Positions 2,108-41,762 of a DNA stretch of 64,000 nt are shown piece by piece. The notes below the pieces were generated by a model. The model was not told the DNA's origin. It did not search any database and worked only from the letters and a program-made list of their open reading frames with translations. Source of the DNA: Bugula neritina (Eukaryota > Animalia > Bryozoa). The number at the start of each line of letters is the position of its first letter. Within the stretch, counting starts at the first letter, position 1. Made by a program: the position numbers and the translations under genes. The stretch lies in the NCBI GenBank assembly GCA_964035545.1, contig OZ037765.1:32611504-32675503 (forward strand), given 5' to 3'.

Positions 2108-5100
2108 ATGGGTTTACTTTTGTTGAGTGTGCTCTCTGTTCTTCAACTAGCTCTGGGCTATCCTAACGGTGCACCAGATGTCGCTTGTGATTCTTTCAGG
2201 CCGTTCCATGTGAACCGAACAACAAGTCAACCTTTTGAACCTAGGAATGAAAGTCCACCTGTAACTCAACCGAGTATTGACTCCTGCCCGTACCAGATTA
2301 CCTACAGCGGCAAATTCACTCCCGGACAGGATATTACTCGTGAGTAAACTTATACAAGACACAATTTTGTTTGAGTAAGACTTTTCTCACCTTTCTTCTC
2401 CAATGGGTTGCTTAAAAAGCTTGGTGACTACAGAATATTATAATATAGTATTCTAATGTTAGTTTAGACTTAAAATTTGCACCTTTTCTGGACAAAGTCT
2501 TCAAGTGGTTTTTTAATAAGTTTAAATTTAGCTTTTTATCCCAATCTCAATAAAGTCAGGTTTCCTACCAGTGACACAACAATCAGTATTAAATTGTCAT
2601 TACCCTAGTGCTATTATATTTCACCAGTTGACAGAACTTAGATTAGCATATATTTTAAGTAGTGTGACATAGTTTGTGCTATTTTTACTTTTTTCATATA
2701 GCGCTGCTTCAAAATTTTGACTTATAAAACAATTAAAACTAGATAAAGAGACATGAGCAAGTATAGGTTTATTAAACAAAGAAAAATTAAACTAAAACTT
2801 TGTCATTTCTTTATTTAACAACTTATAGAGCTTAGTAAAAGAGTTAAAATAAGAATGTGTAGAACTATCACAACCAATAGTAACTTTCATATTTTTGGTT
2901 GCAGTTACAATTTCTCCGTTGAACCGAGATGACTATTTCCGAGGCTACATGCTATCAGTCATGGAAGAGGTGGATGAGCAAGGGGTCAAGAACATTATAC
3001 CTGTTGGTGAATTTGGCAGATTGACCAAATCCGTCTGCAGAGGCCGTACAGCTACTCACAGCAATGATCAGAGGAAAGGATCTGAGGATGTCATATGGAT
3101 CGCTCCACTCGACTCTTCAAAGAAAACATTCAGCATTTGGTAATTTTTTCTTTGATGGACTTCTGCTTTTACCAATTGTTTGAGTAACATTGAAACTTTA
3201 TTAAAAAAACTATTTAATAAAAACACTTTTCTAACTTGTAATTCTAATAAAAGTTTCTAACAATTGACATTTGATAAATGTATCATGTTGTTTGGGCAGT
3301 GTTATTCAAGCATATCAATGCTTAAATAATGTTTTGAAACTAATTAGCATATTAATGCATTCAAAACAACAAACCTTATAAAAAGTTTATTCAAACTAAA
3401 TAGCCATTTGACATTGATAGACAGGTGATAGTTTTTTATATTACTTGCCTTCAGGCTGACAGTGGTGAAGTCATACTCAAGGTACTGGGTGAACTGTGCT
3501 GGAGTTAACATTTCGGCAGTAGATGCTTTAGACTCACCCACTGCTACTACTACTTCTAACAATGTATCCACCACCACCATAAAGCACCTGGCTGGAATCA
3601 TACTACCAAAAGAAGACACAACTGTGTTCAATAAAGGAGGTGTCAGTCGTAAAAACGATCTGACTCACAATCTTGAGGGGCACACACAGAGTAATGGTCC
3701 TGGAGGACATAATAATAACCCTAGTGGGTCTTTTACACCCACAGGTCATGGAGTTAGTAATCATACACATGGCACTACAGAAGTAAGACATAATGTAAAT
3801 GTTCAAACTCACGACCCTAAAGACCAAGGAGTTCATACACATGGTTTGCACAATAATAGCCACTCACAAGGGACAGGCACCCACACCCATGGACAAGGTG
3901 ACCACGCCCATGGTCCAGGTAGCAACACTCATGGAAAAAGTGATCACGCCCATGGACCAGGTAGCAACACCCACAGACCAGGTAGTAATACTCATGGAAT
4001 AACTAACCCTAAGCATAATATCTACCAGCAAGGAACAAAGCCTAGGAACGTTAATGGTAACACTGATGATTCCAGTGAAGTAGATTCTTCAGTCTCCAAA
4101 GAAAACAATAATAAAGGTATGCTAATTGGCTGGGTTTTATTACAAATATACAATTAATAATAATTTTAAACAGTTATGTTGCTTGTAAAGGCTGAAAAGA
4201 CAATATTGCATAGTTTAGGGTTTATCAGATTTATAACAACATTTTAACAAAATAAGTTTAATGATTGTAGCCAACAAGCTTGTTGGTAATGGCCAGAATG
4301 ATGATGACAGTCTAGTGAGTACAAGTAGTGAAGATCTAAACAGCGAAGGAAAGGACGAAAGTGGAAACAGTATTGAAAACTCTGTTGGTAAGCTTCCTAT
4401 ATTGTAATACAAGATTAATTAATTTATTAGAATAATTTAGTTTAGCAGTTATGCCTATAAATATTCTTCCAGTCCTCACTTACATGTCTGTTTAAATGAA
4501 ATTACGATTGGTTTCAAAAACCACACTATTAGGCAAACTAGTGCAGTTGAGTAAGTTTTAAAACCAACCATCTGAGCAACTTAAGAGTTTTCAATGGAGT
4601 AATTATTATTAGAGTTTGAGGTTGACTAACTTTCCGAAATTAAGTTGCCGATAACAGGTATTTTAAAATTGTCCAATTAAATGATTACAAGTGGAAACCA
4701 ATTATAATATTTATAATTAAAAAACATGCTTTCTGTTTTTTTTTCATTTAATGTGTTGTGACTAGAACTTTCATGGCTCTGCATCTAGCTACTTCATATA
4801 ATTTCTCTCTATTTTATATAGAAAAAGAAACATTAATTGCTTAAAATTCAAATATTTTTCATGTTGTTTTTACAGTTAATATTGAATTCCTTTATTACTC
4901 AATAAAACATGTAGCTTTCTACATACCTAATATATTTTATTTAAGATCATTAAAAACTCTTATGTAGTTATAAACTCATGTTTGTATAATTTAGGTAAAC
5001 TTTTATCCTATTTGCATTCCAGAGGCAAGATTTTCAAAGATGCTTTAAAATGCACTCATAAACTAAAAAAAAAATTGTAATTCATGATATTTTATAGCTC

Positions 5101-5556
5101 AAATTATACACCTAAAGAACCATTGTGCAGCATGTTATAGTATAGGGGTATAGTACATATCTTCGTTATTACTGAGGGACTTCCAGCTAACCCGTTCTCT
5201 CCCATTGTGAGAAAATTGCAGCTCATAAGGCTATGATACTAGGTGGTTTAAGGACCCCATGATTCGTTTCCTATCTTTCTTAGTCTGTGGTGAATCTAAT
5301 TACTCTGTGATTGATTGCAGATATCTCAGACAACAGATCCGGATCCAGTCTGAACAGCGCGGAGAAAGAAACCAGGAGAAAGAAGTTCTTGTCTACAGGA
5401 ATCCAGAAATTTGACACCGATATCAAGCAGTTCTTGAAAGGAGTTGGGAAAAGTCATCTCCTGTCTTCAAAAAATGCTGCTGCCTCACCTACCAATATAG
5501 CCTCTACTCTGTCTCTAATTTTATTCACCATTCTGTCATTTTTCCTATGCATTTAG
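2108..5556 (+). CDS. Secreted Reeler-domain protein with His/Gly-rich region and C-terminal GPI-type signal (cluster gene A, ~493 aa, 5 exons)
   Basis: Exons 2108-2339, 2905-3139, 3455-4116, 4271-4387, 5321-5556; GT-AG introns; total 1482 nt. Signal peptide MGLLLLSVLSVLQLALG, then Reeler hallmarks YPNGAP..AC..F.P.H, PYQI, FRGYML, VGEF, ATHSN, W.AP, TVVKSYSRYW. His-rich repeats (HGPGSNTHGKSDHA). Hydrophobic C-terminus with no cytoplasmic tail. Confidence 0.88.
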
Positions 5557-7512
5557 GTCACAGCAAAGGCCATTTACAGAAAAGCTGTGAAAAGCTTGCT
5601 AAGCATACCAAAGCTATGTTTTGTTATATTTCTCTGTTATATTGTTGTTGTTCATTTAATCTGTTCTTTGTTAAGTTTTACTAATATAATATTATTCATT
5701 GGGTAGTATAACTTTCAATATATCAATTAAACTTTTTATGCTAGTAAATTGATATACTAGCACCATATAGATGTATATCGATCTATTGATAGCACATTGG
5801 AATATTGATATACTGATATAGTATTTATTGGTATACTAAAGTAAAAATTATTGAACAATTTTTTCTCAATTATTTCTCCAATAATTTCATTTCTTGTAAT
5901 ATTTCTTTTACTAATTTTAATGCCACTTGTTTATTAAGTAAACTATACAGTAGGTGTTAATTCTGTAACTATGACAACTATAACCGCTACTAACTCTAAA
6001 AAGTCTTTAGCTGCTAAGTACTTTTTATATTGTTATAAGGACATAATTATACTCAAGAAAGCAAGAATATGGCATGTAAAGATATGTGATGATGACATGG
6101 TGATGAATATTTTGCTCACATACATGACTGAATATATTTTTACAGCAGAGAAAAGCTTATTGTTTGAAATCAATATCCATCAAGGTTTTAAACGACATCA
6201 AAAAAATGCTATGTAGCCAAAGACCTTTATGATTGTTAATGTAGTACATGTGTAGTACAGAATAAAAGTTGCATACGTGCTTCCAAACCTGCATTGTTCT
6301 AGTTGTGACATGTACTATTTACATAAAACAAGTTGAGTGATTATTTTATAGGAAAATGCTAGTTTTAGTATAACTTTTGTAAAGTTTGAAATTAATTCAC
6401 TAGGAAGTTCCTGTATGATAAAAGTTAACAATGCATGCATAATGACCTATTTCATAATTGCTGCTCTATATTCGAGAAGCTCATATAACTATATATATGT
6501 GAGAGTAGATGTGTATGAATACAAGATTCAATGAGACATAACTATTAATTGTACAGCTGAGTAAATTTGCATATTTGTGTTTATTAATTGGCTAATGAAC
6601 AGGGTACAATCTGAGTTGAATTTTGACAAAAATTTAGGTCATTGGAATAAGAATTTAAAAAGATGTCTACTTTAATTTTTTTAAAGCTAAAATTGTTTTT
6701 CTTAGAAAATATTTTAATTTATTCATTTAGGTAATTAGTGTAATTGAGTCAGCAATTTGCATTCAGCTGTAATAAAAATAATCAGACATTGTATCATTGC
6801 TATTGGATTAGACAAACTTTGCAAAGTTTTGACCATTCACAGATAATTGCAGAAAGATTAGCACAAAAATAATTTAGTTATTCTATACCTCCACTTGGTT
6901 GAAGAGGCTTAAACTATAGGTTTGAAATAACAGAAAAATTAATTAAATAACAATTATTAGTTGAATGCATGTAGAATAATCCAAATTTAAAATAGCTGGC
7001 ATGCAGCTATTTTCCTTTCGACTCTCAAATACTTTAGAGGGTGGAGAAAAATAGCCCCTGATTATAGATCTTCTGATCTCAATTCAGACCGCCAGTGAGA
7101 TCAGACAAATAGATGTAAAAGTTAACCGCTGTATTTAATAATCAGCAATTGATAATGTTAGTATAGCTTTCATAGAGCAATGAGAGCTATTTTGGTACAG
7201 TCTTTGCCATAAATATGTACATTTGGTTAATCTAAAGTTTCCCCTGCAGCGCTAGTTGCTATTATGACTCAACAATAATCTAAAATAAGATAATAAGATT
7301 ATACAACTATAGAGTAGCTATAACATATACAACAAGTAATGGATGCAACTTTAATGATAGGTGTGCCCAACTTTTCTATCATTTAACACTTGAAAAATAC
7401 GTCAGAATAAATTGGTCAAATTTGCATATTGAATTATTGTAAGCCAGTATATTAAGCTAGATTATAGTCAGGAGTCTTGCATTGACTTGTTCATTCACAA
7501 AGCAAAAGCAAC

Positions 7513-9302
7513 ATGAAGGTTTTACTCGTTTCTGTTTGTTTGTTTTCGTTGTGTTTTTCATTACCAACTTCTCTGGTACACACTGCTGATGACGATGGAA
7601 TGTACACGGATGACAACAGAACAAGCCTAATCCATACGCAACACCAACTTGCTGACAACCAAGATGACAATGTGACAGTGACTACCGACAGCGTTGTAGA
7701 GACCATTCCTGGCAGCATGGTGGAGACAGCTACTGGCAGCGTTGTAGAACTGAATTCTTCTGATGATGCTGGAAAACCTACTCTTGAAGAGAATACTGGC
7801 TTTGTTCATCACGATGATGACTTTAATTCAACTGAACTTCACGCTAATCACTCCCTCGGACACGGCAATGACGATCTATATTTTGACGATGATCACCTAA
7901 CTGGATCAGGTACAAACCATTCATTTGTGAGTGACGATGACCATATCCATGAGAATAATACTACCAGGGCAAATGATACACATGCTGGTACCGATGACAC
8001 AGTAGATGATCTTTCAATCAGTGGTAACAGCACATTTGATGACTTCGTGGAAGATAGAATGATAAATGGTAACAGCACATCTGATGACGTTGGAGATGAT
8101 CTACCAATGCACGGTAACGTCAGCACATCTGATGACTCTGTCAGAGCAATCGGCAGCACCAACAATGACACCATAGACGATGACGGAGCAGATATTCTTT
8201 CACACAATGATTCCAGAGTTGGTAAGTTACTGAGTTAATCAGTTTATTATAATATCTTTGTCTTACAAAACATACAGCACAGACATTCTGTTGCATGCAG
8301 TTCTTAAAACGTGATCAATCAGCTAGATGTGTGTTTGAACAGACCATTTTCTCTATATTGAAAAATAATTTACTTTCTCAGATGACACCAATGAAAAAAA
8401 TGACACTTCCATTGAGAACAAGTATGCTGATGATAAGGGAGAAAAGCTGGAAAGCAATCTAGACAGTAAGTTGGACAGTTTGGAAGATGCTGATAGCAAC
8501 ACAGATGATGATGTCAGTAAAGATAATGACAGCAGCAAAGATACTAGTACCAGTCAAAATGACAGCAAAACTGATAGCGCTGATGAAAGTGGCAGCGATA
8601 ACAGCCAAGACAGTGCAGAGAGTGATAACAGCGAAGGAAACAGCGAGAAAGACAGCATGAGTAACGAAGACAGCAGCAATGGTGATGAAAGTAGCAGCGA
8701 CGAAAGTGGAACATACAGCAACGAAAACTCGGATGGTAAATACGTTGTTATTCTTGTGTTTTGTGATAATTTTTTATCAATATTTAACAGCTAAAACAAA
8801 CAAATCTGCTACATATTTCTGTCACTACTTTTAAATTGCTCGGTCACCTTTAACAGCCAAGTGACTACACAGGCTAATCACATTATTTGGAGGTCAAGCA
8901 AACAGCAATGACTTCTAATATTATACTAAACTGTGAACATAAACACTGCTCTCAGCTAACCTGTTTCATGCTGAGCTGTGAATTATGTATAGAGTATAAT
9001 ATTGCATAATACTAGTATTAAAAGCTGCTTATACATTCTTTTATACATCAGTGCTCAAGACCTTAATGTTTTGAATTTTAGATGACTCGGATGATAGATC
9101 TGGGTCAAGTCTAGCCAGTGAGGAGAAAGATGAGAAGCGCAAGCAATATCTCAACAAAGGAATAAACAACTTTGATAAAGATATTCGCAACTTCCTGACA
9201 TCCGTTGGTAAAGAAAATCTGTACGATCAGTTCAGCTCTGCTATGCCATTGTCAGGCTCTATAGTAGTGTTGGTAGCTGGCGTGGCCGCGTTGCTCTCAT
9301 AA
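7513..9302 (+). CDS. Secreted Asp/His/Ser-rich acidic glycoprotein with GPI-type signal (cluster gene B, ~427 aa, 3 exons)
   Basis: Exons 7513-8221, 8382-8735, 9082-9302; both introns phase 1; total 1284 nt. Signal peptide MKVLLVSVCLFSLCFS; many N-x-S/T sequons. Last exon DDSDDRSGSSLASEEKDEKRKQYLNKGINNFDKDIRNFLTSVGKENLYDQFSSAMPLSGSIVVLVAGVAALLS*. Confidence 0.88.
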
Positions 9303-12300
9303 GACACTGCTACTTCCTGTAAACCAATAGCTGTGGAAGACAAACCATGCCCTGCATATTATTGAATACTCCCTATTCTCAGACTAGGATACATGAAGGG
9401 CGGACATTTTATTCTTACATGAAGGAACTTTAGTTGACCTGCCCTTTCCTTAAACTATCCTAAATATTTTGTTTGATTTGTGTGTTTTTAATTAATTCCT
9501 TTGATTATCACGTAGACATTTAGAAAATGACTTCCAGCTCCAGAGTTTATCCTTTTAAAGGAATTTGAATATATGGGCTGCATAATATCATTATTTCTTA
9601 TGTTATTAGGTATGCAGACATGTTTAGGCAGGCTATTATAACTTATATATCTTTATGCAGACTATATTATTGTCAGGCCGGCCTGACCATTTATAATGCA
9701 TTATATATTATATTTATGTAATTAATTATTTTATAATTAACCACTCCTATATATTTTTAGCTATATAGTTCATGAATAGCTTTAATGAATATGATATTTC
9801 CTACGTAAACATAACATAAATTACCATAATATATTATTACTATAAATGTGAGATATTTACATTCACAACTATAAAAAAATAACTCATAAATCTTATAAAA
9901 GCAAAAATATTTGTTTGCAGTAAATTCTGGAATTCGCATTTCTTTGTTATGTGAACATACGTATGTATTTTTTAATATTATGACATTAAAAATAAAACAC
10001 TTTTATATGATTTGTGTCTTTGATGATTATTTATATTTTTTTCATATTAGCAAACATTTTAATAGAGTATAAAGTTGATGCAACTATATGATAATCCAAC
10101 TTACAGAATGAATACGTTTATAAAAAGGATAGTTTGGTAAGTACAAAAGCACAAACTACATACAAAAACACAATCTACAGCACTTAGATAGCTAATTAAA
10201 TCAATACTTAGCCAATAGAACTGCTAGATTGCAACTAAATGCAAATCCAATCTAAGAGATGGTATGCATCATCACAATTATCAACTAAATATCTAATGCA
10301 CTATAATGCACTAAATAACGATTATATTGCAAACTTAAAAATAGATTTAAATTGGGAAAATTGGGACTATTATTAGTTGAATTTCTGGTTCACTTGGCAT
10401 GAGTCTATATATCAGGATACAGAACTTCCTTGGTCACTAGTTCCGCATAAACTATCTCAAGTATTGAGCAAACTTATAGCAGGTGGAGAAAATTACTTGT
10501 AAATTGTATCTTTTATTTTTAAAATTATAGATAAATTCTACAATTTTTATAGAAAGTATATTATATACTGTATTAGCCAATAACAAGGCTTATCCATTTT
10601 GTTGATGTTTACAGTATGAATTATTTTGTGTGACGTTTTAATGTTAATTGAACTGCACCATTTTTTTAGTTTGGGGTTATCTGCTCTCATTTTAAAACTG
10701 TAAAACTAATAAAAAGTTTGCTTTAAAATAATGGCTAGTACTAAAAGTGTTACAATTCAGATATGCTTGAGTAGTGTTTATAGTAAGCTTTTTTAAGATT
10801 ATACAGTATTTTATTATAGAATCAAAATAAAAGTGCCCTGTTGATTGTCACACAGTATACATATGTGTAGACAAGTCTAATAGGGTAATTATGACAATAA
10901 CCTAGAATTACAAAAGTCCTGAAGCAAGAAATACATTGCTCTTGGGAAAGACAACTGCTTATTATAAAAGAGCAGCTGCTTTGTATCAGAGTTATCATCT
11001 CTAAACTCTAAATTTATATTTCATGCCATGAGAGGGGTTGTCCTCTCACCGATTACCATTCTGTAAAATTTTGATCAATGGCTTGTTTTAGCTTTAGCTG
11101 TAATATGCCAAACAGTACAATTTCTTGTAGTTGTAACTTCAAGTTTATATGCAGTTTTTAAGAAATTAAACTAGCATGTAATATGGGGATAGATTCTCAA
11201 GCAGTACTAACTACTTTGTTGTATTGTTTTGGTGTCTAGTATTAAGATGTTTTGATATACTTTAACTAGATAGGTTTTACTGCCAACTCAAAGACATGCA
11301 TTATTAACTACGCAATGCTATGTTGATCCCGTCAATATTTCACTGCATATATATATAGCAATATTGCTTTTCCAGAAAATATTCATACTACTAAGTTTTT
11401 ATGAGAAAAGATTAACGTAACTTCTATTTAAATGCAGCTGGTAAGAAGTAAATTCTTTATGATCCTAGTTCAGCATTTACTCATGTTGCTGTGTATTGCA
11501 TCTTAATTTTAAGCATACTATGTTACTGAAAACATTTTAGGTGCAAAGTTACCAATTAGAATCTTAGCAGCATTCAAATCTCAGCAGAATTAAATTTTAT
11601 GTTTATAATGCTTTGGCATGTACGAAATATTTGCTAGATGTATCTATTAGTTTACACTTTAAATATAATACTATTACTGACCCTGGCAATATATAATCAT
11701 ATCTGAAGTTGTCTTCCTTTATGCAACATTCCATTTAAAATAATATAATTTGCTGGTCATCTAACAGAACACTATTTATAGAAAACAAATTTAAATTTAA
11801 AACATCACCAAATGATACATGCGTGTACTCCAAATATATTTACACTTCAAAAAGTATATATAATTATCGGCATGCACATGCATAATTACATTATCATAAT
11901 CCAAAAAAATACAATAATTAATTATTGCGAGTTGTTATGATGGGATAATTAGGCTATATATTAGTTGCAGTACAGAGTGTTCCAGCACGGATGTCTATGT
12001 ATTGTGATTCACTTAATGAAGAGTAAATGGATGGAGGACACAGAAGCACAACTCAATCTTCTGCCAACAGTTTATTTTTCTCACAAAACTGTAACAATTA
12101 TTTGGACAATAAAGTTTAAGTTGCCTGCATCTTAAACAAGAGGGAAATTGAGCTGTACTGACTCATTAAACAAAAGCCAACAGTAAAAAGTTATTGCAAA
12201 AGCTTTCACAAAAAGCTTTCCTCAAACAATCAAAAAGCCTCTGCAACACAGAGTTATAAATATCTCCCTTTGAAAATTGACCCACTTTACTGACTAAGGA

Positions 12301-19070: not shown

Positions 19071-22000
19071 ATGAACATTCTAGTTGTTGCTCTGACTTGC
19101 TTTGTAGCACTGGCTGCTGCCGCACCTACGAGTTTGCTGCCGGCTTGTGATACCTACGGAGGTAAATGTAGCCTCAGTACCAGAGCTACCAGCAGGGGGC
19201 TGCCTCCACCACTAGTGCCCCTAGAAGGTGAGTAAATAAATAGCCAACTAGAGTTGTTTTATTTATCAGCATTTTATATATTTTTACTGTTTCACTTTAT
19301 TAATTTATTTTTTTTAATGCTTATATCACTCATAAAAATTAAAAGAATTCAATCTTGAGTCAATCTTTGCAAAACATTTTTAAAAATTTAGGTAAGTTTA
19401 TTTGAACAAAGATGTTTTTTACAATTAGCATTGCTTTACTTTTTAGAACAATTATCTTACAACCATTTTACTGTGTGTGAGCATGATCTACAGAATTATA
19501 CATTACTTACATAATTTCTTTTCAGAAAAGCATAAAATATACTTAAAAATGTAACATTTTATTACTTTTTATGCTATCTAGAACTAAAATATAAATGTTA
19601 ATTTCAGCTTTTTACTTACAAGTACATTTTAATTTCATAAACCTTTTGCAATTTAAATAAAAATATATTGAGGAATAGTAACAGTTTTTTAACAAGCTAA
19701 TAAAATGTGGTAACATATTATTTTCTATAAAATTCTAATATATAAAATAAGTCAAGTAACAGTATTACAATTTCCACATTACGGCATGTTTGTTTGCTAT
19801 AATTTTGTTTAAAATCTGCCTTTCTTACTTCCATATATCAGCAAAGCCTGTTACACAATACTAAAAAGTTTTGCAGCAAACAAATTTGCAAGAAGTAAAA
19901 AACTTTTAATACTTTTAAGCTGATGACTCGGCAAGTAAAGAAGCAGACGTCAGTGCAGATGATGACAGCAAACAAGATAAACTAGACAGTGCAGATGCTA
20001 GCACTGGCGACAGCACTGGGGACAGCCAAGCAGAAGACGGTGCTGATGATGGAAGTCAGGGCTCTGAAGCTGATGATAGTAAAAACAACAGCAATGAAGA
20101 TAAGAGTGAAGGAGACGATGATAAAGACAGTGGAATTGGCGGCAGCAATGAGCATGGAGCAGACGATGGTGACAGCAAGGAGGATAGCAAAGGTCATAGT
20201 GGTGCAGATGATAGTTATGGTGACAGTGGTGAAGGTGACAGTTTTGGTGCTAGCAATGAACTAGGCAGCAAAGATACTGATGACGTAAGTGGCAGCAAAG
20301 ATACTGATGACGTAAGTGACAGCAAAGATACTGATGACGTAAGTGGCAGCAAAGATACTGATGATGTAAGTGGCAGCAAAGATACTGATGACGTAAACGA
20401 CAGCAAAGATATCGATGACGTGAGTGGCAGCAAAGATATTGATGACGTAAGTGGCAGCAAAGATATTGATGACACAAGCGACAGCAAAGACTTGGATGGC
20501 GAAGGGGGCAGCAACAGTGCAAGTAAAGAAGATGACGGTATTGCTGATTTTGTGGCTGCCAAAGAATACAATGGACACAGAGGTGAAAGTGCTGGCCATG
20601 GTGTTGTTAGAGGAAGCAGCAATGGCATTGGTGTTGATGATGATGTCATTGGTGTGCATGATGATGTCATTGGTGCTCATGACGCTGTTGCTGGAAATTC
20701 GAGAGAGGGTGGAGTTGAAAAAGGTCATGATGACATAGATGATGACAATGGGAGATTCGGTGAAGGAGCTGATGGTGTAGATAATCATGATGATGACTTG
20801 GCTATTCATGGTGAGTTCATCAATGATAACGATGACCTTGATGCTGGTGATGACAAGAACACTGCCGATACGAATGACGATGACGATGACCTACAACATA
20901 ACATTGTCAGCACTCATGGCCATGATGACAGTGCTGGAGACATCAATGATGGCAACAATGTCAGAGGTGAAAGCGCTTTCACTGTCAACGAAGACCATGC
21001 AATAGTCAAAGGCCATGATCGTGGCCAAGACAGGAACAGCCACATTCGAGGGCAAATCATCAAAAGCACCAGCTCTAAAGCCTACGGGCAAGACTTTGCG
21101 AGTGATGTCAGTAATAGTGAGGACAAGAGTGCACGTAGCCAAGACCAGAGCGACGGAACCAGTAGCAGTATTCATCACAAGGGAAACAGTTACTACAATG
21201 GTGGAGGTCACGACAGTAGCAGTGGTTATGCAACAAGTGGCAGTGACAGCAAAGAAAGTGGCAGCAGCGAAGGTGCTAGTGATAGTGGTCATAGTGATAG
21301 CAGCAGTGAAAATGGAAATATGATCTACGGAGACTTGAGCAGTGACTCAAGCAGTGATAGTGGAGATGATAGCAGCAGTAGTGGCAGCAATAGTGGAAGT
21401 AGCGATAGTGACAGCAACAAGGGTGACAGCAACAATATTGACAGCCATGATGGCGACAGTAACAGCAAGGGTGACAGCAGCAATGATGGTGACAGCAAAA
21501 ACAAGGGTGCTAGTATCTATGGCGATAAAAGCAGCAATGAGGGTGACAGCAGTAATGGTGATGACAACAGCAATGATGGTGACAGCAGCAACGGAAGTGA
21601 TAGCAGCAGTGATGGTGACAGCCATGATGGTGACAGCAGCAATAAGGGTGACAGCAGCAGCAACGGTGACAACAGCCATGGTGGTGGTAGTGACAGCAAT
21701 GATGACGATAGTGCTGACAGCAATGAAGGTGACAGCAGTGAGGATGATGACAAGAAAAAAGGAGCTCAACACAAGCAAGGTAATTTTTTCAATTTAACAA
21801 TAATCTATTTAAAATTCTATATTGTCAAACATAATATATTTTAGTGTTTTAGCAGAGCATCGATTAATTTAAAATTAATAATTTTTTTTATTATTTTTAT
21901 GCAAATTATGCATTTGCAATTCAAATTTTAGACAAAGCTGTGAAAGGAATCAAGCAAGTATATGGCCTGTCGATGAATGATCCAACTCTGTCAAAGATCT

Positions 22001-22113
22001 TGGATGAGTCGGGAGTGGGCAACCTCCAGCACCTTTATGGGTCAGCCGGCAGCATTCCTACGGGACTTTGCTCTCTCCTAGTGACAACTGCTGTTGCTTT
22101 GTTTGTTTTATAG
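19071..22113 (+). CDS. Secreted Asp/Ser/Gly-rich (DSPP-like composition) acidic protein with GPI-type signal (cluster gene C, ~732 aa, 3 exons)
   Basis: Exons 19071-19227 (MNILVVALTCFVALAAAAPTSLLPACDTYGGKCS..., missed by the ORF track), 19920-21779, 21932-22113; phase-1 introns; total 2199 nt. SGSKDTDDV repeats and a DSS/GDSS-rich tail. C-terminus ...DPTLSKILDESGVGNLQHLYGSAGSIPTGLCSLLVTTAVALFVL*. Confidence 0.88.
20264..20490 (+). repeat. Coding 27-bp tandem repeat (SGSKDTDDV, ~8 copies)
   Basis: ggcagcaaagatactgatgacgtaagt repeated within gene C exon 2. Confidence 0.9.
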
Positions 22114-24233: not shown

Positions 24234-27200
24234 ATGAAGGTATTTCTAGTTGTGCTGCTTTGTGTAATAGCTGCTGTTGCTGCTGCTCCAGTGTGCAACT
24301 CTGGTGAAGGGGACTGTGAAGACAGCAAAGAGAAAACTGAGCTCTCAGGTTTAACTGATCTTGGTAAGTGAAATATAAAGGTTTTTATATATTTGGTAAT
24401 TACATTACTCTGAAATTTAATTTATTATAGAATTTTATTTTGATGAGGGGCTGTGTTGATTTTATAAGAAATTTTATTATTTTTTAACTCTTTTATTTCA
24501 TGAAAATAATTGTAAGATACATTCGCCACAAACATAGAATTCAGAATTTATTTAAAACTAAAAGCCAACAAGCTAGCTACTTTTTTTTAAAATAATTTTA
24601 TATCTACATCTTGTATAAACACACCTTCTGATTATTTACCCCACTAACAGTAGTATACTATGCAGCTGGTAGACTTGAGCTTGATTTACTATTAGTATGC
24701 AGAAAAGGTCATGCACACTATCTTGCACATAATACAAGCTTAAAATATTGCTTAGGAACGGTTCATTCCAAATTATTGTTTGAATAATGTGGTTATAGTA
24801 AAAAATAGTATTAAAGAAGAGATTAGAATAAAAAAATTTATGCAGATCATTTGGATAATTTATAAGTTCTTGTACAAGTATATTATAGCATAAGTTTTTC
24901 TTTTCTTTTTTGATAATATGATTTTTTATTACCTTGATATTTTTTAATCAGCTCCAATTAAAAAAAATTTCTTTTTAATTAGATAATGAATATGATGAAG
25001 CTGAAAGACCTGTAGAGACGGTCAATACACAAACCTACGTCAGACACAACCAAGGTACAACCCTTCAGTATGAAGACGAGCATGACAAAGATCAGGACAC
25101 CGACCTAGACCAAGATGTGGACCAGGACCAAGATACAGACCAGGACAAAGATACAGACCTGGACCAAGATACCCACCTGGACCAAGATACAGACCTGGAC
25201 CAAGATGTAGACCAGGACCAAGATGGGGATGTGGACCAAGATACAGAGCAGGACCAAGATACAGACCAGGACCAAGATGGGGATGTGGACCAAGATACAG
25301 ACCAGGACCAAGATACAGACCTGGACCAAGATACAGACCTGGACCAAGATGTAGACCAGGACCAAGATGGGGATGTGGACCAAGATACAGACCAGGACCA
25401 AGATGTAGACCTGGCCCAAGATACAGACCTGGACCAAAATGTAGACCAGGACCAAGATGGGGATGTGGACCAAGATACAGAGCAGGACCAAGATACAGAC
25501 CTGGACCAAGATACAGACCAGGACCAAGATGGGGATGTGGACCAAGATACAGACCAGGACCAAGATACAGACCTGGACCAAGATACAGACCTGGACCAAG
25601 ATGTAGACCAGGACCAAGATGGGGATGTGGACCAAGATACAGACCAGGACCAAGATGTAGACCTGGCCCAAAATACAGACCTGGACCAAAATGTAGACCA
25701 GGACCAAGATGGGAATGTGGACCAAGATACAGACCAGGACCAAGATACAGACCTGGACCAAGATACAGACCAGGACCAAGATGTAGACCTGGACCAAGAT
25801 ACAGACCTGGACCAAGATACAGACCTGGACCAAGATACAGACCAGGACCAAGATGGGGATGTGGACCAAGATACAGAGCAGGACCAAGATACAGACTTGG
25901 ACCAAGATGTAGACCAGGACCAAGATGGGGATAAATCAAGCATCAAACCTAGTGAGGATGATCATGCAGATGTAAAACCATATGCTAATCATTATGATAA
26001 TGATCTTGATGATAATGAAGACATTGACAATGGAGATCTTGGCAACGATGATCTTGGCAACGATGATCTTGATGATGATGATCAGGTTGATGGTGACAAA
26101 CATACTGATGAAAACGCTGATGATGATAGCACAGAGGCACCAAAACAGTTTAATGGTGGTCATCTTTACAGCTCCAATATATACAACAAAAACCCAACTA
26201 TCGAAAACAGACACTATGCCAAGAATGATGGAGAAGATAGAAACAGCATGGAGAGTCCCATTAAACAAGTCGATGTTCATCAGAGCGAGGAAGATGAGAG
26301 TGCTGATGATAATGAGGGGCCAATCAGTACAGAGAATAACTTTGTTGATGACAATGATGTCAACGAGGATGACAGCACAAATATTGACGCTGACTATAAC
26401 CACGGAGAAAACAACATGGCTGACAGTACTGAAGATGCTACCAGCGCCGAGACTGTTGATACTCAGAGTGAAGAAAGCGCTGAAAACTACAACCATGACA
26501 ACAATGAGAACAATGATGAAAGTGCAGCTGACAGCAAAATTGATGAGAAGAATGACAGCAGAAGCAGTGCAGAAAGAAATGACAACTCTGACAATGATGA
26601 TAACATTGATCAACATCATGACAGCCAATCAGCAGACAGCAGTTTGTATGGACATGGCAGTTATGTTGCTATTGACAACAGTGATAGTGCAGATGATAGT
26701 GAGAGCATAGAAGACACTGATGATAGTGCAGCTGATAGCCAGAACATAGAAAACACCAGTGAGAGTGCTGAAGACAACAAGAACATAGAAGTCAACAGTG
26801 AAAGTGCAGAAGTGCAGAGTGCAGAACACATAGAAGATACTAGTTACAGTGCAGAAAATAGCGAGAGCATAGAAGACAATGTAAATAGTAAGGATAGCAG
26901 TGGTGACAATATCGGAGACAATAGTAACAGCGGTGACAGAGGGGGTGTTAAGGTTATTGGAGACATCAACAGCACAAAAGGCAAAGACAGCGTGGAAGTG
27001 AGAGATGATAGCAAGGCAGATAGTGAGGATAGCAAAGGAGAAAGTGATGGCAGTGAGAGAGACAGTGGCGAGAAGGACAGTGTGGAGGTCAAGGGACACA
27101 GCACAGAGAGCAATGGTGATAGTGGTGATGGAGAGAGCATAGAGGCTAGTAGTGGCAGTGCAGAAAAGAGTGGTAGCAGCATTGAAAAAAGCAGCGTAGA

Positions 27201-27889
27201 GACTAGTGGTGTCAGCATTGAAGGAGGCAGCGTAGAGACTAGTGGTGCCAGCATTGAAGAAGACAGTGTGGAGACTAGTGGTGTCAGTGCAGGAGAAAGT
27301 GGTGACATTGACAGTGTGAATGTAAGCAGTCAAAGTACAGATGAAAGTGGTGACAGTACAGATGAAAGTGGTGACAGTACAGATGAGAGTGGTGACAGTA
27401 CAGAGGAGAGTGGTGACAGTACAGATGACAGTGGTGACAGTACAGAGGAGAGCAGTAGCAGTAGTGAAAGTGGTGCTAAAGACTGCCCACAGAATTTGGA
27501 TTCGTTGGCTTTGAGCAGACTAGCAAAATATACTGGTAAGTCAAGAGAAATAAGAAAATATAACGTAATTTAATCTGTAGAGCATGGATATGATGAAATG
27601 TTTAGCACGCCTATGCTTATAATATATTTGTATAGACATATTAAAACTTGTATGCATGCAACAAAGTCTTATATTTGAAGCCTGATATTTTAACTTTCTT
27701 ATATTCATTGCAGACGAAGATATTGAGAAGATCGTGCTCGTACTGAGAGAGAATGCCAAGAGTGAGTTGGACAGCATATTGAAGAAAGCTGGAGTATCAA
27801 ACCACATAGATCTGTATGGTTCAGCAACAGCCACAACCTTTAGCACATTGCTGCTTCTCATAGCATTATTTGCTGCTGTTCTAGTGTGA
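24234..27889 (+). CDS. Secreted (Asp-X)n-repeat hyperacidic protein with GPI-type signal (cluster gene D, ~952 aa, 3 exons)
   Basis: Exons 24234-24363 (MKVFLVVLLCVIAAVAAAPVCNSGEGDCE...), 24983-27535, 27714-27889; phase-1 introns; total 2859 nt. C-terminus ...SELDSILKKAGVSNHIDLYGSATATTFSTLLLLIALFAAVLV*. Confidence 0.88.
25084..25932 (+). repeat. Coding tandem repeat encoding alternating Asp-X (~283 aa)
   Basis: Units gaccaagatacagacctg, gaccaggaccaagatggggatgtg etc.; translation DQDTDLDQDVDQDQDGDV. Confidence 0.93.
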
Positions 27890-33300: not shown

Positions 33301-35509
33301 GTGTAAGTATGTCAAATGAATTTCATTGACCTCTTAATCTGTTTGCTTAATTTAATGTTTCTCAACATCAACATTTTGTTTAATTAGTGAAAGCAATCAG
33401 GTGTAACTTATAATTTCTGTAGTCATTTAGACTATGACCTGCTATGATTCAGGAATGTAATTCAAGGTTATAGGAATTAATGTTCGTATTAGTTAAACTA
33501 GTATTTAGATTGCAGAAGATTATAATATATATGTTTGCAATATGTACTGCTACTCTATACTATACACTCTGTATACTCTGTACTGTATACTATGTACTGT
33601 ATACTCTGTACTGTGTACTCTGTACTGTATACTCTGTACTGTATACTCTGTATACTCTGTATACTCTGTATACTCTGTATACTCTGTATACTCTGTATAC
33701 TCTGTATACTCTGCACTGTATACTTTAGAATATTACTCTTTCAGATGATCAAAGAGTTGGTCCTTTGGTAGTGTTTGTGAAAAGGTGGGCTAAATTCCAG
33801 AATATAAATTCAGCGAAAGATAAGACAATTTCTAGCTACGTATTCACACTCATGGTGATACACTATCTCCAGATGGGTGTTTCAGGACCTCCAGTACTGC
33901 CAGCTTTACAGCGTACACACTCAGTAAGTTATATACACTCAGTAAGTTATATACTCAGTAAGTTATACTTGTACAATGAGTTCTGCACTTTTAGTGACCT
34001 CTACTCATCTAGGCACTTTTATGAACCCTGTAAGTTTACTTATGTCATTCATGAAAAATCTCACATGAGTTTATTAGTCACCATCCCTGTGAGAAACCCT
34101 GATGGAAAAAGTGGGCTAAGGATTTTTTTCTAGTGTGGCACAGGAGCAATTATGACTGAATGCTCTTCCTAACATCACCAATAGCCTAACAACCACTCAC
34201 CTCATGTTTACTAGGCCAGCACTCTAACCTCTACACCACGACTGCTCCTTGAAAGCTAATTCATATTAAATAAAAAAAAAATTTTTGTAAATGCGAAAGA
34301 TACTTTTGAAAAATTGTGCTTTTAAGTTTTTCACTTACTTTTCAGGTGCAACTTTATTCTAATATTTATGTTTATAGAATTGAGAACAGAGTTTTTATTT
34401 TAGAAATTATCAGTCATTAGGCAACAATGATATTGAAAAATTAATATAGAAAACTGCAATAATCATTGTTTATTCCTGTTTTAGCATTTATTCAAAGAAA
34501 ATATTCAAGAATTAGACATGTTTTTGGAGTTTCCTACTCAGAAGAATTCTGGACGTAGTACTTTGTCAGTTAGTCAACTTTTCTCTGGCTTCCTGCGATA
34601 TTTTGCTCATCAGTACAAGTAAGTTGGATGTTTGTCACATTTATGTCATAGTTATTGCTTAATGGAAATATAGAGCTTTTTTCTGTGTATTTATTGGGTA
34701 TTGTTTTATTGTGAATGAGTTCGAACAATATGTGCTTTGCTCCCACTTTCCTAGTAATTATCCCTTATATTTTATAGTTCAGTAGCTAGAGGCACTTATT
34801 TTTAAAACTATCAATGCATTTTTGACGTGCCATTTTTATATTATATTTGATGAGTTATAAATCTTATTTCAATTACATATAAACACACATAATACGCCAT
34901 AACTAGTTTATTAAGTGTCAATGAAACTTTATGTTTTAGTTATAAAAGGGACGTGGCCTCAGTAAAGCATGGTAGAATATTTCACATAGATTCCGTAAAA
35001 CACCAACGCATACCCTCTCAAGACTATCACAAGAGTTCGTGGGATGGAGCTCAAATGTATATTGAAGGTATGTCTTACTAGTGACACAAAGCCTGAGCAT
35101 ACCTCACGTGTATAAATGTCATCTAGTTTTAGTTCAGTTCTCATTTATATTAGCAATATAGTCAATCATTCTTTGTAAAAAACCTCGTTTTATTTATAAA
35201 TATTTATCTTTTATTTCGAAATTGAAATAGCTCGCAAAGTTTCACATGCACACAAAAACTATAAAGGCAAAAATTTGTTACTAAGTGGTAAATAATATGT
35301 TATAATGGTTATTTGAAACTTGTGAAATATTGCTGGAAAATGTTTTCGAAAATTTTAAATGTTTTGTAGAGCCATTCAGTCTAACAAACGCTGCCAGGAG
35401 TGTGTATGACGAAAACGTGTTTAGTCGGATACACAGAGTCTTCATCAGATCGAGCAGGGCTTTAGACCAATCAAAAGACATTAACTCTGTACTGCAGCAC
35501 CCTTTCTGA
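30321..35509 (+). CDS. GLD2: GLD-2/TENT2-like non-canonical cytoplasmic poly(A) polymerase (~424 aa, 11 coding exons)
   Basis: Exons 30321-30388, 30959-31166, 31556-31670, 32110-32201, 32657-32720, 32974-33043, 33226-33302, 33745-33923, 34485-34618, 34940-35067, 35370-35509 (1275 nt; first two exons least certain). Pol-beta NTase motif LYLVGSSITGFETGSSDVDL, IRATVPILHFCD, third Asp in EYDMSLNNDVAVRNSHLLRCY, VKRWAK..NINSA..KTISSY.FTLMVIHYLQ, and nucleotide-recognition motif IEEPFSLTNAARSV. Confidence 0.88.
33543..33725. repeat. Intronic (TATACTCTG)n-type satellite
   Basis: 9-bp and 14-bp units repeated in GLD2 intron 7. Confidence 0.9.
34050..34250 (-). mobile_element. tRNA-derived SINE-like repeat, copy 1 (GLD2 intron 8)
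   Basis: Shares ccctgtgagaaaccctgatggaa, gctaagga, gcacaggagcaatt.tgactg.atgct and ctctaacc.cta.accacg.ctgctcctt with the other two copies. The head resembles a tRNA A-box. Confidence 0.7.
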
Positions 35510-36408: not shown

Positions 36409-36444
<36 letters not shown>

Positions 36445-38633: not shown

Positions 38634-38686
38634 AGAGGTGCAAGCAAAACAGAAGTCAGGCTGGCACTCAAAACTGCACAATCAAC

Positions 38687-41600
38687 ATGAAGTATACAAT
38701 TCTCACTCTCTTTTGTCTTGTGGCACTGGCTGCTGCAGTACCACTTTGTGACATTTATGGAGGAAATTGTAATGTTGCGTTAAAGGCTGCTGGCGGCCTA
38801 CCTAATATTGGAAATCGTGGAATTAGCAAATTAGCTCAACCCGATAGCAAAGGTAATATATTATTCTATAAAATAAAATTTATTCATTTGATTTCACATA
38901 ACAGCTTTCAACAAAGTTTTTAATTGTATATAGTTTAGAAACCATAGGCCAAACAATTTTATTACATTTTAAAATGGCTTGAAACAATAAGAACTTTGCT
39001 AGAAAAGTACTGCTTTCATTTTGTATTGCAAAATATTTTTGTGTACAGTTGTCTAATACAAAACTATTTACTTGTTGCTACTTTTTTGAATATGTCAAAT
39101 GATCTAAATTATCTAGATGAAAAAGTAATATATTTTTGCATCACTACTTGTATACAGTATGCTAAGAAAGTAGCAATTATTGCATGGTTTTATGGTTTTC
39201 TTTTCACCTTTATACCTAAAAATTATAAACTAGACTTTATCGATAAAAACTTATAAACTAAACATATAAATTAACTAAATGCAAGCTTGCAATACAAATT
39301 TTTACAGCTTTGAGTATGGCATTTGGTTTCTCTTCTTAACAAATATAGGCCATTTTCTAAGATAGAAAAAATGAATAATAAACAAACTCCTAAATTACAT
39401 TAAAATTGATTTGTTATCAGAAAAAGCCTAAGATATTGACTATGATATAAATTGATAAAAATAAATATTCAACATAACTTATGGTTTTCTAATTGAAGCC
39501 AATCTTTTTAAAGGTATCCTCAGTTTAAAAATATTGCATAAAATAATAGCCAACAAATTTTAAACTTGTAGACAATGATGGAAATGATGATGGTCAAGAT
39601 AGCGTAGGGCATGACGACGATGGTCAAGACAGCGTGGGACATGATGATGATGGTCAAGATAGTGTAGGCCATGATGACAATGGTCAAGATAGTGTGGGAC
39701 ATGATGACAATGGTCAAGATAGTGTGGGACATGATGACAATGGTCAAGATAGTGTGGGACATGATGACAATGGTCAAGATAGTGTGGGACATGATGACGA
39801 TGGTCAAGATAGTGTGGGACATGATGACGATGGTCAAGATAGTGTGGGACATGATGACAATGGTCAAGATAGTGTGGGACATGATGACGATGGTCAAGAT
39901 AGTGTGGGACATGATGACGATGGTCAAGATAGTGTAGGACATGATGATGATGGCCAGATTGGCGACAATGGTGCCAACATCTATGGTGATCATAGCAAAA
40001 GTGGTGACGATAGCAAAGTTGGTGACGATAGCCAAGGTGGTGATGATAGCCATGGTGGTGATGATAGCAAAGTTGGCGATGATAGCAAAGTTGGTGATGA
40101 CAGCAAAGGAGGTGATGATAGCAAAGGAGGTGATGATAGCCAAGGTGGTGATGATAGCAAAGGAGGTGATGATAGCAAAGCTGGTGATGATAGCAAAGTT
40201 GGTGATTATAGCTATGGTGGTGATGATAGCCATGGTGGTGATGATAGCAAAGTTGGCGATGATAGCAAAGTTGGTGATGACAGCAAAGGAGGTGATGATA
40301 GCAAAGGAGGTGATGATAGCCAAGGTGGTGATGATAGCAAAGGAGGTGATGATAGCAAAGCTGGTGATGATAGCAAAGTTGGTGATTATAGCTATGGTGG
40401 TGATGATAGCCAAGGTGGTGATGATAGCCATGGTGGTGATGATAGCAAAGGTGGCGATGATAGCAAAGGAGGTGATGATAGCAAAGGAGGTGATGATAGC
40501 CAAGGTGGTGATGATAGCAAAGGAGGTGATGATAGCAAAGCTGGTGATGATAGCAAAGTTGGTGATTATAGCTATGGTGGTGATGATAGCCAAGGTGGGG
40601 ATGATAGCCAAGGTGGTGATGATAGCCAAGGTGGTGATGATAGCCAAGGTGGTGATGATAGCCATGGTGGTGATGATAGCCATGGTGGTGATGATAGTCA
40701 AGGGAATGATGGAAAAGATAGCTATGGCATTGACAGCATCGAAGGTGGTGACAGTAATGGAGACGACAGCAAAGGGGGAGATGATAGCAACGGAGACGAC
40801 AGCAAAGGAGGAGACGATAGCAATGGAGACGACAGCAAAGGGGGAGATGATAGCAATGGAGACGACAGCAAAGGGGGAGATGATAGCAATGGAAACGATA
40901 GTAATGGAGATGACAGTCATGGTGATTATAGCTATGGTGATGATAGTCATGGAGATTATAGCAGTAATGGAGATGGCAGCAGTAATGGAGATGATAGTCA
41001 TGATGATGGCAGCAGCGAAGGAGACGACAGTAATGGTGATAACAGTCATGGTGATTATAGCTATGGTGATGATAGTCATGGAGATTATAGCAGTAATGGA
41101 GATGGCAGCAGTGATGGAGATGATAGTCATGATGATGGCAGCAGTGAAGGAGATGACAGTTACGGAGATGATAGTAATGGAAGTGATGACAGCAATGGTA
41201 ACGATAGTAGTATTGGTGATGACAGCAGTAATGGAGATGGCAGTAGTAATGGTGATAGCAATGGTGATGACAGCAGTGATGGTGATAGCAATGGTGATGG
41301 CAGCAGTGGTGGTGATGGTTATGGAGATGACAGCAGTAATGGTGATGGCAGCAGTGGCGGTGATAGCAATGGTGATGACAGCAATAATGGAGATGATAGC
41401 ATGGATAATGATGATAGCGGCTCAAGCCATGGAGATGATAGCAAAGAAGGAAAATATTCTACTGATCTTGGTCTCGGTAAGCAACTAGTTTTAAATTCAT
41501 TTAAATTGACAATATGTTTCATGTTTTGAAGCTAGCTAACAAGACTTCAGAAAAATGTATTGTATAACGCTTTATATATTTTGCAGGTAAAAATACAATC

Positions 41601-41762
41601 CTCGGCTCACTTGACAAACACCTTGATGATCCTAAACTGCAAGGTATACTAAAAGATGCAGGACTGGGCAGTCTACAGGATCTCTATAGCTCGTCAGCCA
41701 TCAGTGCTTCAGGACTTATGTCACTACTGCTAGTAGCTGCCGCAGCTGTCCTCTTTTTGTAA
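38687..41762 (+). CDS. Secreted Gly/Asp/Ser-repeat acidic protein with GPI-type signal (cluster gene E, ~748 aa, 3 exons)
   Basis: Exons 38687-38852 (MKYTILTLFCLVALAAAVPLCDIYGGNCN...), 39572-41476, 41587-41762; phase-1 introns; total 2247 nt. GHDDDGQDSV and GDDSKG repeats. C-terminus ...DDPKLQGILKDAGLGSLQDLYSSSAISASGLMSLLLVAAAAVLFL*. Confidence 0.88.
39586..40700 (+). repeat. Coding tandem repeats: 30-bp GHDD(D/N)GQDSV array, then 18-bp GDDS(K/Q/H)G array with 180-bp higher-order period
   Basis: Visible 30-bp phase over ~39590-39950; the variant unit ggtgattatagctat (GDYSY) recurs at 40201, 40381 and 40561. Confidence 0.9.

Follow-up and report, generated by a model that had tools for sequence, protein, structure and literature searches.

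A tandem family of five secreted, putatively GPI-anchored repeat proteins in the bryozoan Bugula neritina, with candidates for a role in skeleton building

Results

Organization of the gene cluster

The window that we analysed is a 64,000-nucleotide stretch of the B. neritina genome (contig OZ037765.1, positions 32,611,504 to 32,675,503). Between positions 2108 and 41762 it harbours five genes, A to E, all on the + strand and with clean GT..AG models. The five models are complete: each runs from an ATG to a stop codon through GT..AG introns, and its CDS length is a multiple of 3. The original prediction of five co-oriented genes is thus borne out, and its bounds coincide with the ATG of gene A and the stop codon of gene E. 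The genes share the same exon order, in which an exon for the signal peptide comes first, a body that changes fast follows, and the last exon is conserved. All introns are in phase 1 except one in phase 2, inside the Reeler domain of gene A, and the split codon at the body/tail junction begins with G every time. A nucleotidyltransferase gene unrelated to the family lies between genes D and E, and the 3′ end of FAN1 is found 2.6 kb from the terminal exon of gene E.

All searches were run exon by exon, and compositions were totalled over whole codons within single exons. Transcript evidence covers genes A and B only and comes from two RNA runs, X1 and X2, that carry no tissue labels. The assembly also contains a 15.2-kb mitogenome that uses the invertebrate mitochondrial code. 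At conserved COX1 positions, AGA encodes Ser, ATA Met and AAA Lys, by which a tunicate or a flatworm was rejected as the host. A tRNA scan of the mitochondrial contig gave 23 calls in mitochondrial mode, including two duplicates and one without assignment, and none in standard mode.

Gene A codes for a Reeler domain followed by a His-rich stalk

Gene A comprises five exons.
2108..2339, + strand: exon 1, signal peptide and start of the Reeler domain, ending in phase 1 with a GT donor
2905..3139, + strand: exon 2, core of the Reeler domain, with AG/GT sites
3455..4116, + strand: exon 3, last part of the Reeler domain, followed by a stalk rich in Thr, Asn, Gly and His
4271..4387, + strand: exon 4, short acidic Ser/Asp/Asn linker, phase 1-1
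5321..5556, + strand: terminal exon, SGSSL-x-S-x-EK stretch, amphipathic helix, NAA omega-type site, 19-residue hydrophobic tail and stop

In exon 1, the ATG is followed by a hydrophobic core and a cleavage-type site between ALG and YPN. Pfam analysis of exon 2 identified a Reeler domain (PF02014; 31.7 bits vs a cut-off of 21, E 2.6e-7). The match of this exon alone spans profile positions 34-115 of 131, and the flanking exons supply the two ends. The domain had been overlooked in the earlier description of gene A, which had correctly reported the His-Gly repeat. This tandem repeat is found at 3881-3973 with a period of 21/42, in an exon whose product contains 13 % Thr, 12 % Asn, 12 % Gly and 10 % His. 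The transcript contigs that cover exon 3 reveal a 6-nt length variant within the repeat. Within the family described as acidic/His-rich, proteins B to E are acidic, but protein A as a whole is not, having 9.6 % Asp plus Glu and a net charge of -3.

The loose end of a transcript contig connects the end of exon 2 to position 3454, and another contig covers exons 3, 4 and 5 together with the 3′ UTR. Exon 4 is joined at both ends in the X1/X2 contigs. The joints were aligned as 4114>4269 and 4387>5323, corresponding to exact exon ends at 4116/4271 and 4387/5321.

Proteins with a PF02014 domain include insect defence proteins, FRRS1, F-spondin and the N-terminus of reelin, and exons 1-3 of gene A similarly code for a Reeler domain placed after a signal peptide. 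Unlike in these proteins, the Reeler domain of protein A is followed by a His-rich stalk and then by a GPI-type tail exon common to the acidic paralogues. We found no description of this arrangement in the literature searched.

Genes B to E code for acidic proteins with distinct repeats

Gene B is composed of three exons.
7513..8221, + strand: exon 1, signal peptide followed by an Asp-rich body (14 N-x-S/T sequons)
8382..8735, + strand: exon 2, Ser/Asp/Asn/Glu-rich body, phase 1-1
9082..9302, + strand: terminal exon, motif and helix as in gene A, SSA omega-type site, hydrophobic tail and stop

Exon 2 codes for 25 % Ser and 21 % Asp. The X1/X2 contigs cover exon 1 and carry the joints 8220>8381 and 8734>9081 as aligned (exact ends 8221/8382 and 8735/9082), the latter being present in both RNA runs. 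Because transcript contigs carry body-to-tail joints for both genes, the tail exons of genes A and B belong to messages. These two exons are 42-43 % identical, and the AlphaFold2 model of the gene B tail exon shows a helix at residues 13-40 with a pLDDT of ~80.

Genes C, D and E each have one large body exon.
19071..19227, + strand: gene C exon 1, signal peptide and Cys-x6-Cys motif
19920..21779, + strand: gene C body, open frame, phase 1-1, with 23 % Asp, 20 % Ser and 14 % Gly
21932..22113, + strand: gene C terminal exon, L-x-K-I-L..G..L..LYGSA motif, GSA omega-type site and 15-residue tail
24234..24363, + strand: gene D exon 1, signal peptide
24983..27535, + strand: gene D body, 27 % Asp, (Asp-X) array and further Ser/Glu/Asp repeats
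27714..27889, + strand: gene D terminal exon, GSA omega-type site and 14-residue tail
38687..38852, + strand: gene E exon 1, signal peptide and Cys-x6-Cys motif resembling that of gene C
39572..41476, + strand: gene E body, 31 % Asp, 25 % Gly and 18 % Ser
41587..41762, + strand: gene E terminal exon, SSS/SSA omega-type site and 15-residue tail

Each member of the family has its own repeat chemistry, and the tandem repeats match those described earlier. The body of gene C has an SGSKDTDDV repeat (27-nt unit, 8.4 copies at 20264-20490) and Asp/Ser/Gly repeats at 21470-21686; its non-repetitive part has no match among 5.8 billion proteins. Gene D harbours 45.8 copies of an 18-nt Asp-X unit at 25102-25926. 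In gene E, a 30-nt array at 39584-39953 is followed by 39.7 copies of an 18-nt GDDSKG unit at 39984-40697. Protein B contains 17 N-x-S/T sequons in total. The net charges of proteins B to E range from -74 to -269, the latter value being that of protein D.

Terminal exons and predicted membrane attachment

The presence of a signal peptide in each member agrees with rule-based analyses of the N-termini. In all five the hydrophobic core averages 2.8-3.8 on the Kyte-Doolittle scale, and positions -3/-1 are occupied by small residues. At the other end, 22-27 residues before the C-terminus, are the small-residue triplets NAA (A), SSA (B), GSA (C and D) and SSS/SSA (E). In all five proteins the triplet is followed by a spacer of 4-7 residues and an uncharged hydrophobic tail of 13-19 residues that ends the protein at the stop codon. 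The hydrophobic stretch after small residues, with no cytoplasmic tail, is thus as first described, and by the same kind of rules it is a GPI-type signal. The foreign homologues, without exception, end similarly, with an uncharged hydrophobic C-terminus of 13-19 residues preceded by small residues and a short spacer. On these rule-based grounds, we regard proteins A to E as putative GPI-anchored proteins.

The last exon might alternatively code for a C-terminal sorting signal, a propeptide or a plain membrane anchor, in which case the products would be either secreted in soluble form or single-pass proteins that lack a tail. The part that is conserved lies ahead of the putative omega site and might have a different function, and the anchor call itself follows from rules of thumb. 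Nevertheless, we consider this very improbable, as the five members and all foreign homologues have a classical GPI signal, with tail, spacer and small residues, together with a signal peptide.

Upstream of the putative GPI signal, the last exons of the A/B type contain an invariant SGSSL-x-S-x-EK stretch that includes an S-x-E site. The site is invariant in seven out of seven such exons, whereas those of genes C, D and E are devoid of it. The tail helix of the A/B type has a helical moment of 0.64-0.70 (0.64 for A), which is reached by at most 0.1 % of shuffled sequences. For the tail exons of genes C, D and E, the shuffle test for an amphipathic helix was not significant. Fam20-type secretory kinases are encoded in the genome, and proteins of the cluster may be phosphorylated.

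Relationships within and beyond the cluster

When the 1879 six-frame segments of the window were searched with HMMs built solely from foreign sequences, the matches were the five tail exons and nothing else (E 7e-26 to 8e-10). The E values were 5.5e-24 for gene A, 7.4e-26 for B, 1.8e-16 for C, 7.6e-10 for D and 1.5e-16 for E. A profile of the five exons searched against the whole 216-Mb genome found only these five, the next best match having an E value of 2.7. These searches support the proposal of a tandem paralogous family whose kinship lies in short terminal exons. However, the notion of one family needs qualification. The five tandem paralogues fall into two subfamilies, A/B and C/D/E, between which the sequence link is weak (hhalign probability 73 %, E 3e-5), in addition to their common phase-1 exon plan. 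Pfam analyses of every exon returned nothing except the Reeler domain in exon 2 of gene A; tails and bodies had no match.

Homologues were collected from Logan runs and from metagenomes without taxon names, in which they form 9 and 8 clusters at 90 % identity. In these relatives, found on genome-skim and metagenome contigs, the tail exon is kept and the Asp/Ser repeats are quite different, in line with the earlier suggestion that the acidic repeat bodies diverge fast. Other parts of the genes are also conserved. Contig L017 carries an orthologue of exon 1 of gene A, with a weak precomputed Reeler match, and exon 4 of gene A is conserved in both L017 and L025. The end of exon 2 of gene B is conserved in L013. 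In L014 an E-like exon adjoins the FAN1 exon for the VRR-NUC domain, indicating synteny, and in L020 the relatives are arranged in tandem. Some of the sources are probably encrusting bryozoans on plastic; homologue contigs probably stem from a metagenome study in which bryozoans dominated the eukaryotic reads (PMC5069773). Altogether, genes A to E represent a real, lineage-restricted new family, which is probably restricted to bryozoans.

The Reeler domain of protein A points to recognition or immunity as much as to mineral. The products of the cluster might serve in recognition at the cell surface, in immunity or in metal handling. In that case the Reeler domain would bind microbial or lipid ligands as in insects, the His and Asp tracts would sequester metals, and the acidic paralogues would be derived members of an immune-type, fast-evolving cluster. 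The Reeler score exceeds the Pfam cut-off, and the His content of exon 3, with its His-Gly repeat, fits metal handling. The rapid turnover of the bodies between species and the polymorphic repeat length are also as expected of such proteins. However, only one member out of five has a Reeler domain, and B to E have no binding domain recognizable by Pfam. Moreover, no His-rich tract is seen in the L017 orthologue of gene A; therefore, this tract is not a conserved function. We regard this explanation as improbable.

Discussion

Comparison with known acidic and anchored proteins

The original prediction likened the cluster to the vertebrate SCPP cluster. The latter encodes DSPP, DMP1, caseins and enamel proteins. 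Both are tandem arrays coding for secreted, disordered, acidic Ser/Asp-rich proteins, with short conserved end exons and fast-changing repeat bodies. In both, single-phase introns permit exon duplication. The S-x-E of the A/B-type tail exons, absent from C, D and E, may be a kinase-type site like that in a conserved exon of SCPPs. Vertebrate SCPP genes have phase-0 introns throughout their coding regions and descend from SPARCL1. In contrast, the introns of genes A to E are in phase 1, with the one exception in phase 2, and the S-x-E site of A and B is in the last exon rather than near the N-terminus. Furthermore, SCPPs are soluble, whereas A to E carry a GPI-type signal. Neither sequence similarity to SCPPs nor, by Pfam, a nearby SPARC-like ancestor was found. 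Because of the phase-1 introns and the lack of detected similarity to any known family, the resemblance is one of analogy and not of homology, and the view of an independently evolved SCPP-like cluster stands in this sense.

Mollusc Aspein and Asprich and coral CARP/SAARP proteins similarly have a signal peptide and an Asp-rich, repetitive, low-complexity body, and they are lineage-restricted and fast-evolving. Unlike A to E, they have no anchor signal, and proteomics has placed them in the skeleton, whereas A to E are known from gene models, and A and B also from transcripts. No homology to Aspein, Asprich, CARP/SAARP or DSPP was detected by Pfam with all exons or in the search of the non-repetitive part of the gene C body against 5.8 billion proteins. 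As for the anchor, sea-urchin MSP130 and other GPI-anchored proteins of calcifying cells make a lipid-anchored protein on the surface of mineral-forming cells an accepted arrangement. MSP130 itself probably belongs to an unrelated family and is a large folded glycoprotein rather than a polyanionic repeat chain.

A possible role at the calcifying interface

Carbonate skeletons evolved in cheilostome bryozoans independently of those of molluscs and brachiopods. We found no bryozoan skeletal proteome or molecular description of the skeletal matrix in the literature searched. Matrix proteins of carbonate skeletons usually have an Asp/Ser-rich, repetitive, fast-evolving and secreted signature (PMC7272335), and B. 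neritina has a lightly calcified wall soon after settlement (PMC4192642). Their composition and probable host make the proteins of the cluster plausible candidates for skeleton building.

We tentatively propose, as a reading somewhat short of probable, that A to E form a GPI-tethered polyanionic family acting at the calcifying interface. All members follow one plan: first an exon for the signal peptide, next at least one body exon of the phase-1/phase-1 type, and finally the last exon, which is conserved. This last exon would encode a short membrane-proximal helix, strongly amphipathic in A and B, and then the GPI-attachment-type signal. Given this signal, the mature products would be displayed as lipid-anchored chains at the external surface of the cell that secretes them. 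Protein A would present its Reeler domain on a His-rich stalk, and B to E would be polyanionic brushes of 400-900 residues, with Asp/Ser/Gly repeats replaced quickly between species. As suggested by their composition, the brushes of B to E may bind Ca2+ and the His tract of A transition metals. Binding would take place at the epidermis-cuticle-skeleton interface of this lightly calcified cheilostome, where the brushes could retain or mould the earliest mineral. They may later be freed into the matrix when the anchor is cleaved.

The same features could serve a general polyanionic cell-surface coat with no specific mineral role, be it in the glycocalyx or at the cuticle interface, for hydration, antifouling or adhesion. 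On this view, anchored acidic chains would maintain charge and hydration at the surface of the epidermis or larva, or would attach that surface to the chitinous cuticle. The anchor signal, the long unstructured charged stalks and the sequons of protein B, which suggest heavy N-glycosylation, fit this explanation, as does the folded Reeler head that protein A carries on its stalk. Bugula is, moreover, only lightly calcified. GPI-anchored acidic repeat coats exist elsewhere, an example being the trypanosome procyclins (EP/GPEET), whose acidic surface chains are likewise built on repeats and come from genes arranged in tandem. The analogy concerns the coat function only, since procyclins belong to the coat of a protist, are ~100 residues long, contain Glu-Pro repeats and have no kinship with the present family. 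However, the bodies of the Bugula proteins do not have the Pro/Thr/Ser make-up of mucins, and their Asp-Ser and Asp-Gly repeats are instead typical of mineral-binding proteins. In addition, the homologues with a traced source come from samples that probably contained calcified encrusting bryozoans. A coat function, too, seems somewhat less than probable. Were it true, the family would still show fixed signal and anchor exons framing freely exchangeable repeat exons.

If the proteins do act at the calcifying interface, phase-1 repeat exons that can be swapped between fixed signal and anchor exons would enable rapid evolution of mineral-facing chemistry. The cluster might then even be the first identified bryozoan skeletal-matrix gene family, independently invented and arisen with the de novo calcification of cheilostomes, although we deem this stronger proposal unlikely. 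The cluster constitutes a concrete test object: it is compact and lineage-restricted, and its products combine a probable lipid anchor with a chemistry of the mineral-binding type. Calcified and uncalcified relatives can be searched with the tail-exon profile.

Gene models and transcript support

The window DNA is AT-rich (~32 % G+C in a composition scan), with sharp peaks of G+C and purine skew that coincide exactly with the repeat bodies. Five co-oriented genes (A to E) emerged when the + strand was read from stop to stop and the junctions were then inspected. Each model is complete: it starts with ATG, its introns all have GT..AG ends, it closes with a stop codon and its coding length is a multiple of three. 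The limits of the original prediction, 2108 and 41762, are the start codon of A and the stop codon of E.

Gene models (exons, strand, gene, product)
2108-2339, 2905-3139, 3455-4116, 4271-4387, 5321-5556; +; gene A, 493 aa
7513-8221, 8382-8735, 9082-9302; +; gene B, 427 aa
19071-19227, 19920-21779, 21932-22113; +; gene C, 732 aa
24234-24363, 24983-27535, 27714-27889; +; gene D, 952 aa
38687-38852, 39572-41476, 41587-41762; +; gene E, 748 aa

Introns are in phase 1 throughout, the sole exception being a phase 2 intron within the Reeler domain of A. At every junction between the body and the conserved last exon, hereafter the tail exon, the split codon begins with G.

Positions 3400-9399, which include the tail-exon junctions of both A and B, were compared with two RNA runs of one 2015 study bearing the same organism label. 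Most contigs of these runs that align here match the window at 90-99 % identity, with about half falling at 90-95 %, and intron-free contigs are among them. As aligned, their joints lie at 4114>4269, 4387>5323, 8220>8381 and 8734>9081; GT..AG ends emerge after small shifts permitted by the aligner. One 922-nt contig covers exons 3, 4 and 5 and the 3' UTR of A, and no joint was found in a DNA run over the same region. The messages of A and B thus truly include their tail exons, and RNA junctions support the predicted splicing of both genes within the 3400-9399 interval.

In coding exons, the RNA contigs mostly diverge from the genome by 1-10 % (about half by 5-10 %), and within the His-Gly repeat (3881) they show a length difference of 6 nt. 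Such differences point to very high heterozygosity or to a cryptic sister lineage.

Features of the encoded proteins

Each of the five N-termini combines a hydrophobic core with small residues at -3/-1. The C-termini harbour the very small-residue triplets listed originally, NAA (A), SSA (B), GSA (C and D) and SSS/SSA (E), followed by a spacer of 4-7 residues and an uncharged hydrophobic stretch. As the latter reaches the stop codon in each case, the proteins indeed lack a cytoplasmic tail. Judged by rule only, these are predicted classical GPI-attachment signals; that the proteins are not GPI-anchored is improbable and ranks lowest among the alternatives.

Just past the predicted cleavage site, Cys-Asp-x-Tyr-Gly-Gly-x-Cys is common to the signal-peptide exons of genes C (19071-19227) and E (38687-38852); in D, Cys-x6-Cys occupies the equivalent position. 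At the N-terminus of the mature proteins, these motifs may close a small disulphide loop.

Tandem-repeat analysis of the bodies agreed with the repeats first described. In the main body exons of C, D and E, 23-31 % of the residues are Asp; the values for the two body-bearing exons of B are 18 % and 21 %. B also contains 17 N-x-S/T sequons. Net charges are -74, -119, -269 and -172 for B, C, D and E, respectively, but A is nearly neutral overall (-3), with 10 % His in its exon 3. The initial account of A also missed a Reeler domain: exon 2 matches the Pfam family at 31.7 bits (curated cut-off 21), and the domain ends are encoded by exons 1 and 3.

Relationships among the five genes

A and B share 42-43 % identity in their tail exons, and the tail exons of C, D and E have in common the motif L-x-K-I-L-K-x-A-G, then L-Y-G/S-S-A. 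A five-exon profile retrieved only these five from the 216-Mb assembly (next match, E 2.7). Because this test is circular, it was rerun on 1879 six-frame window segments with profiles from foreign sequences alone. The A/B-type profile recovered B (E 7e-26) and A (E 6e-24). With the C/D/E-type profile, E, C and D were recovered at E-values of 2e-16 to 8e-10, along with a weak match to B (0.003). There was no further match among these segments. Recovery of all five tail exons bears out the proposed tandem family with kinship in short terminal exons. Profile-profile comparison linked the two subfamilies across the helix-to-LY stretch (probability 73 %, E 3e-5). Taken with the common exon plan and the tandem arrangement, these comparisons make it likely that all five genes share an ancestor; the case is firmer inside each subfamily than across the two.

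AlphaFold modelling of an A/B-type tail exon predicted a single long helix (residues 13-40, pLDDT ~80) ahead of the omega region. Helical-moment analysis found this helix strongly amphipathic in A and B; strong amphipathicity was not found in C-E. Upstream of the helix, S-G-S-S-L-x-S-x-E-K is invariant in all seven A/B-type sequences. The S-x-E site in this stretch may be phosphorylated; the genome encodes Fam20-type secretory kinases.

Relatives and genetic environment

When 1.8 billion representative proteins were searched exhaustively by profile, 12 matches were returned, 11 of them short open frames (50-95 residues) on genomic contigs. The twelfth, a 1450-residue protein matched solely via seven short repeated stretches, was left out. 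Word-indexed searches revealed nine A/B-type and eight C/D/E-type clusters. This paucity most likely stems from the scarcity of public nuclear sequence for bryozoans and has no bearing on absence.

On the relatives' contigs, an Asp/Ser-rich open frame precedes the tail exon by 100-250 nt, and the repeat unit of this frame changes from one contig to the next. Contig L017 encodes an A orthologue that comprises Reeler exons, a short acidic fourth exon and the tail exon; the His-rich tract was not found in it. Contig L020 carries two family genes in tandem, and hence the arrangement is not unique to this genome. On this metagenome contig (1-4472), another Asp/Ala/Ser-repeat body begins 3.6 kb downstream of a tail exon. 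On contig L014, ~900 nt separate an E-like tail exon from the final exon of FAN1, a gene also found in the window.

Neighbouring features
32082-32234; +; exon of a gene between D and E, PF22600, mitochondrial-type poly(A) polymerase palm domain (28.5 bits, cut-off 27)
44387-44494; -; FAN1 VRR-NUC exon (43 bits), 2.6 kb beyond E
54223-54519; -; FAN1 TPR domain (52 bits)

FAN1 spans 44387-61263 on the - strand, its 3' end facing E as in L014. Conserved tail exons and FAN1 synteny, together with varying repeats, indicate that end exons and neighbourhood are kept while bodies turn over. The gene between D and E (31500-35500, + strand) is unrelated to the family and contains a 14/28-nt tandem repeat at 33569-33724.

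Possible functions

The predicted features are consistent with lipid-anchored chains exposed on the outside of a secretory cell: B-E would form four polyanionic brushes, and A would present a Reeler head carried by a His-rich stalk. Compositionally, the family resembles carbonate-matrix proteins. B. neritina has a lightly calcified chitinous wall formed within hours after settlement (PMC4192642), calcification is considered to have evolved independently in bryozoans, and our literature search found no published bryozoan matrix protein. For these reasons, we tentatively rank first a candidate role at the interface of epidermis, cuticle and mineral. Almost as likely is a general charged surface coat, for which procyclins are the closest analogue. 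Recognition or metal handling, suggested by gene A alone, is rather unlikely.

For the mineral-interface role, MSP130 offers a precedent of a GPI-anchored protein serving a calcifying cell, although it is folded and unrelated to A-E. The predicted SCPP-like cluster stands as to layout: like SCPP/Asprich-type clusters, A-E are tandem, secreted, disordered and acidic, with single-phase introns and conserved end exons. Nevertheless, their introns are in phase 1 rather than phase 0 as in SCPP genes, no sequence similarity to either type was found, and their products, unlike those families, carry an anchor signal. A-E thus belong to neither family.

Genome context

The mitochondrial contig (15.2 kb) has nearly all tRNA genes on the same strand. 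At conserved COX1 positions, AGA reads as Ser, ATA as Met and AAA as Lys, which indicates the invertebrate mitochondrial code and rules out a tunicate, echinoderm or flatworm. Elsewhere in the assembly, contig C17 carries a bacterial cbb3-type oxidase gene and could be a symbiont or contaminant, and a near-full-length mitochondrial COX1 copy embedded in chromosome-scale contig C6 could be a nuclear mitochondrial insert. Two more COX1-bearing contigs (C214 and C73) read TGA as a sense codon and are possibly foreign mitochondria.
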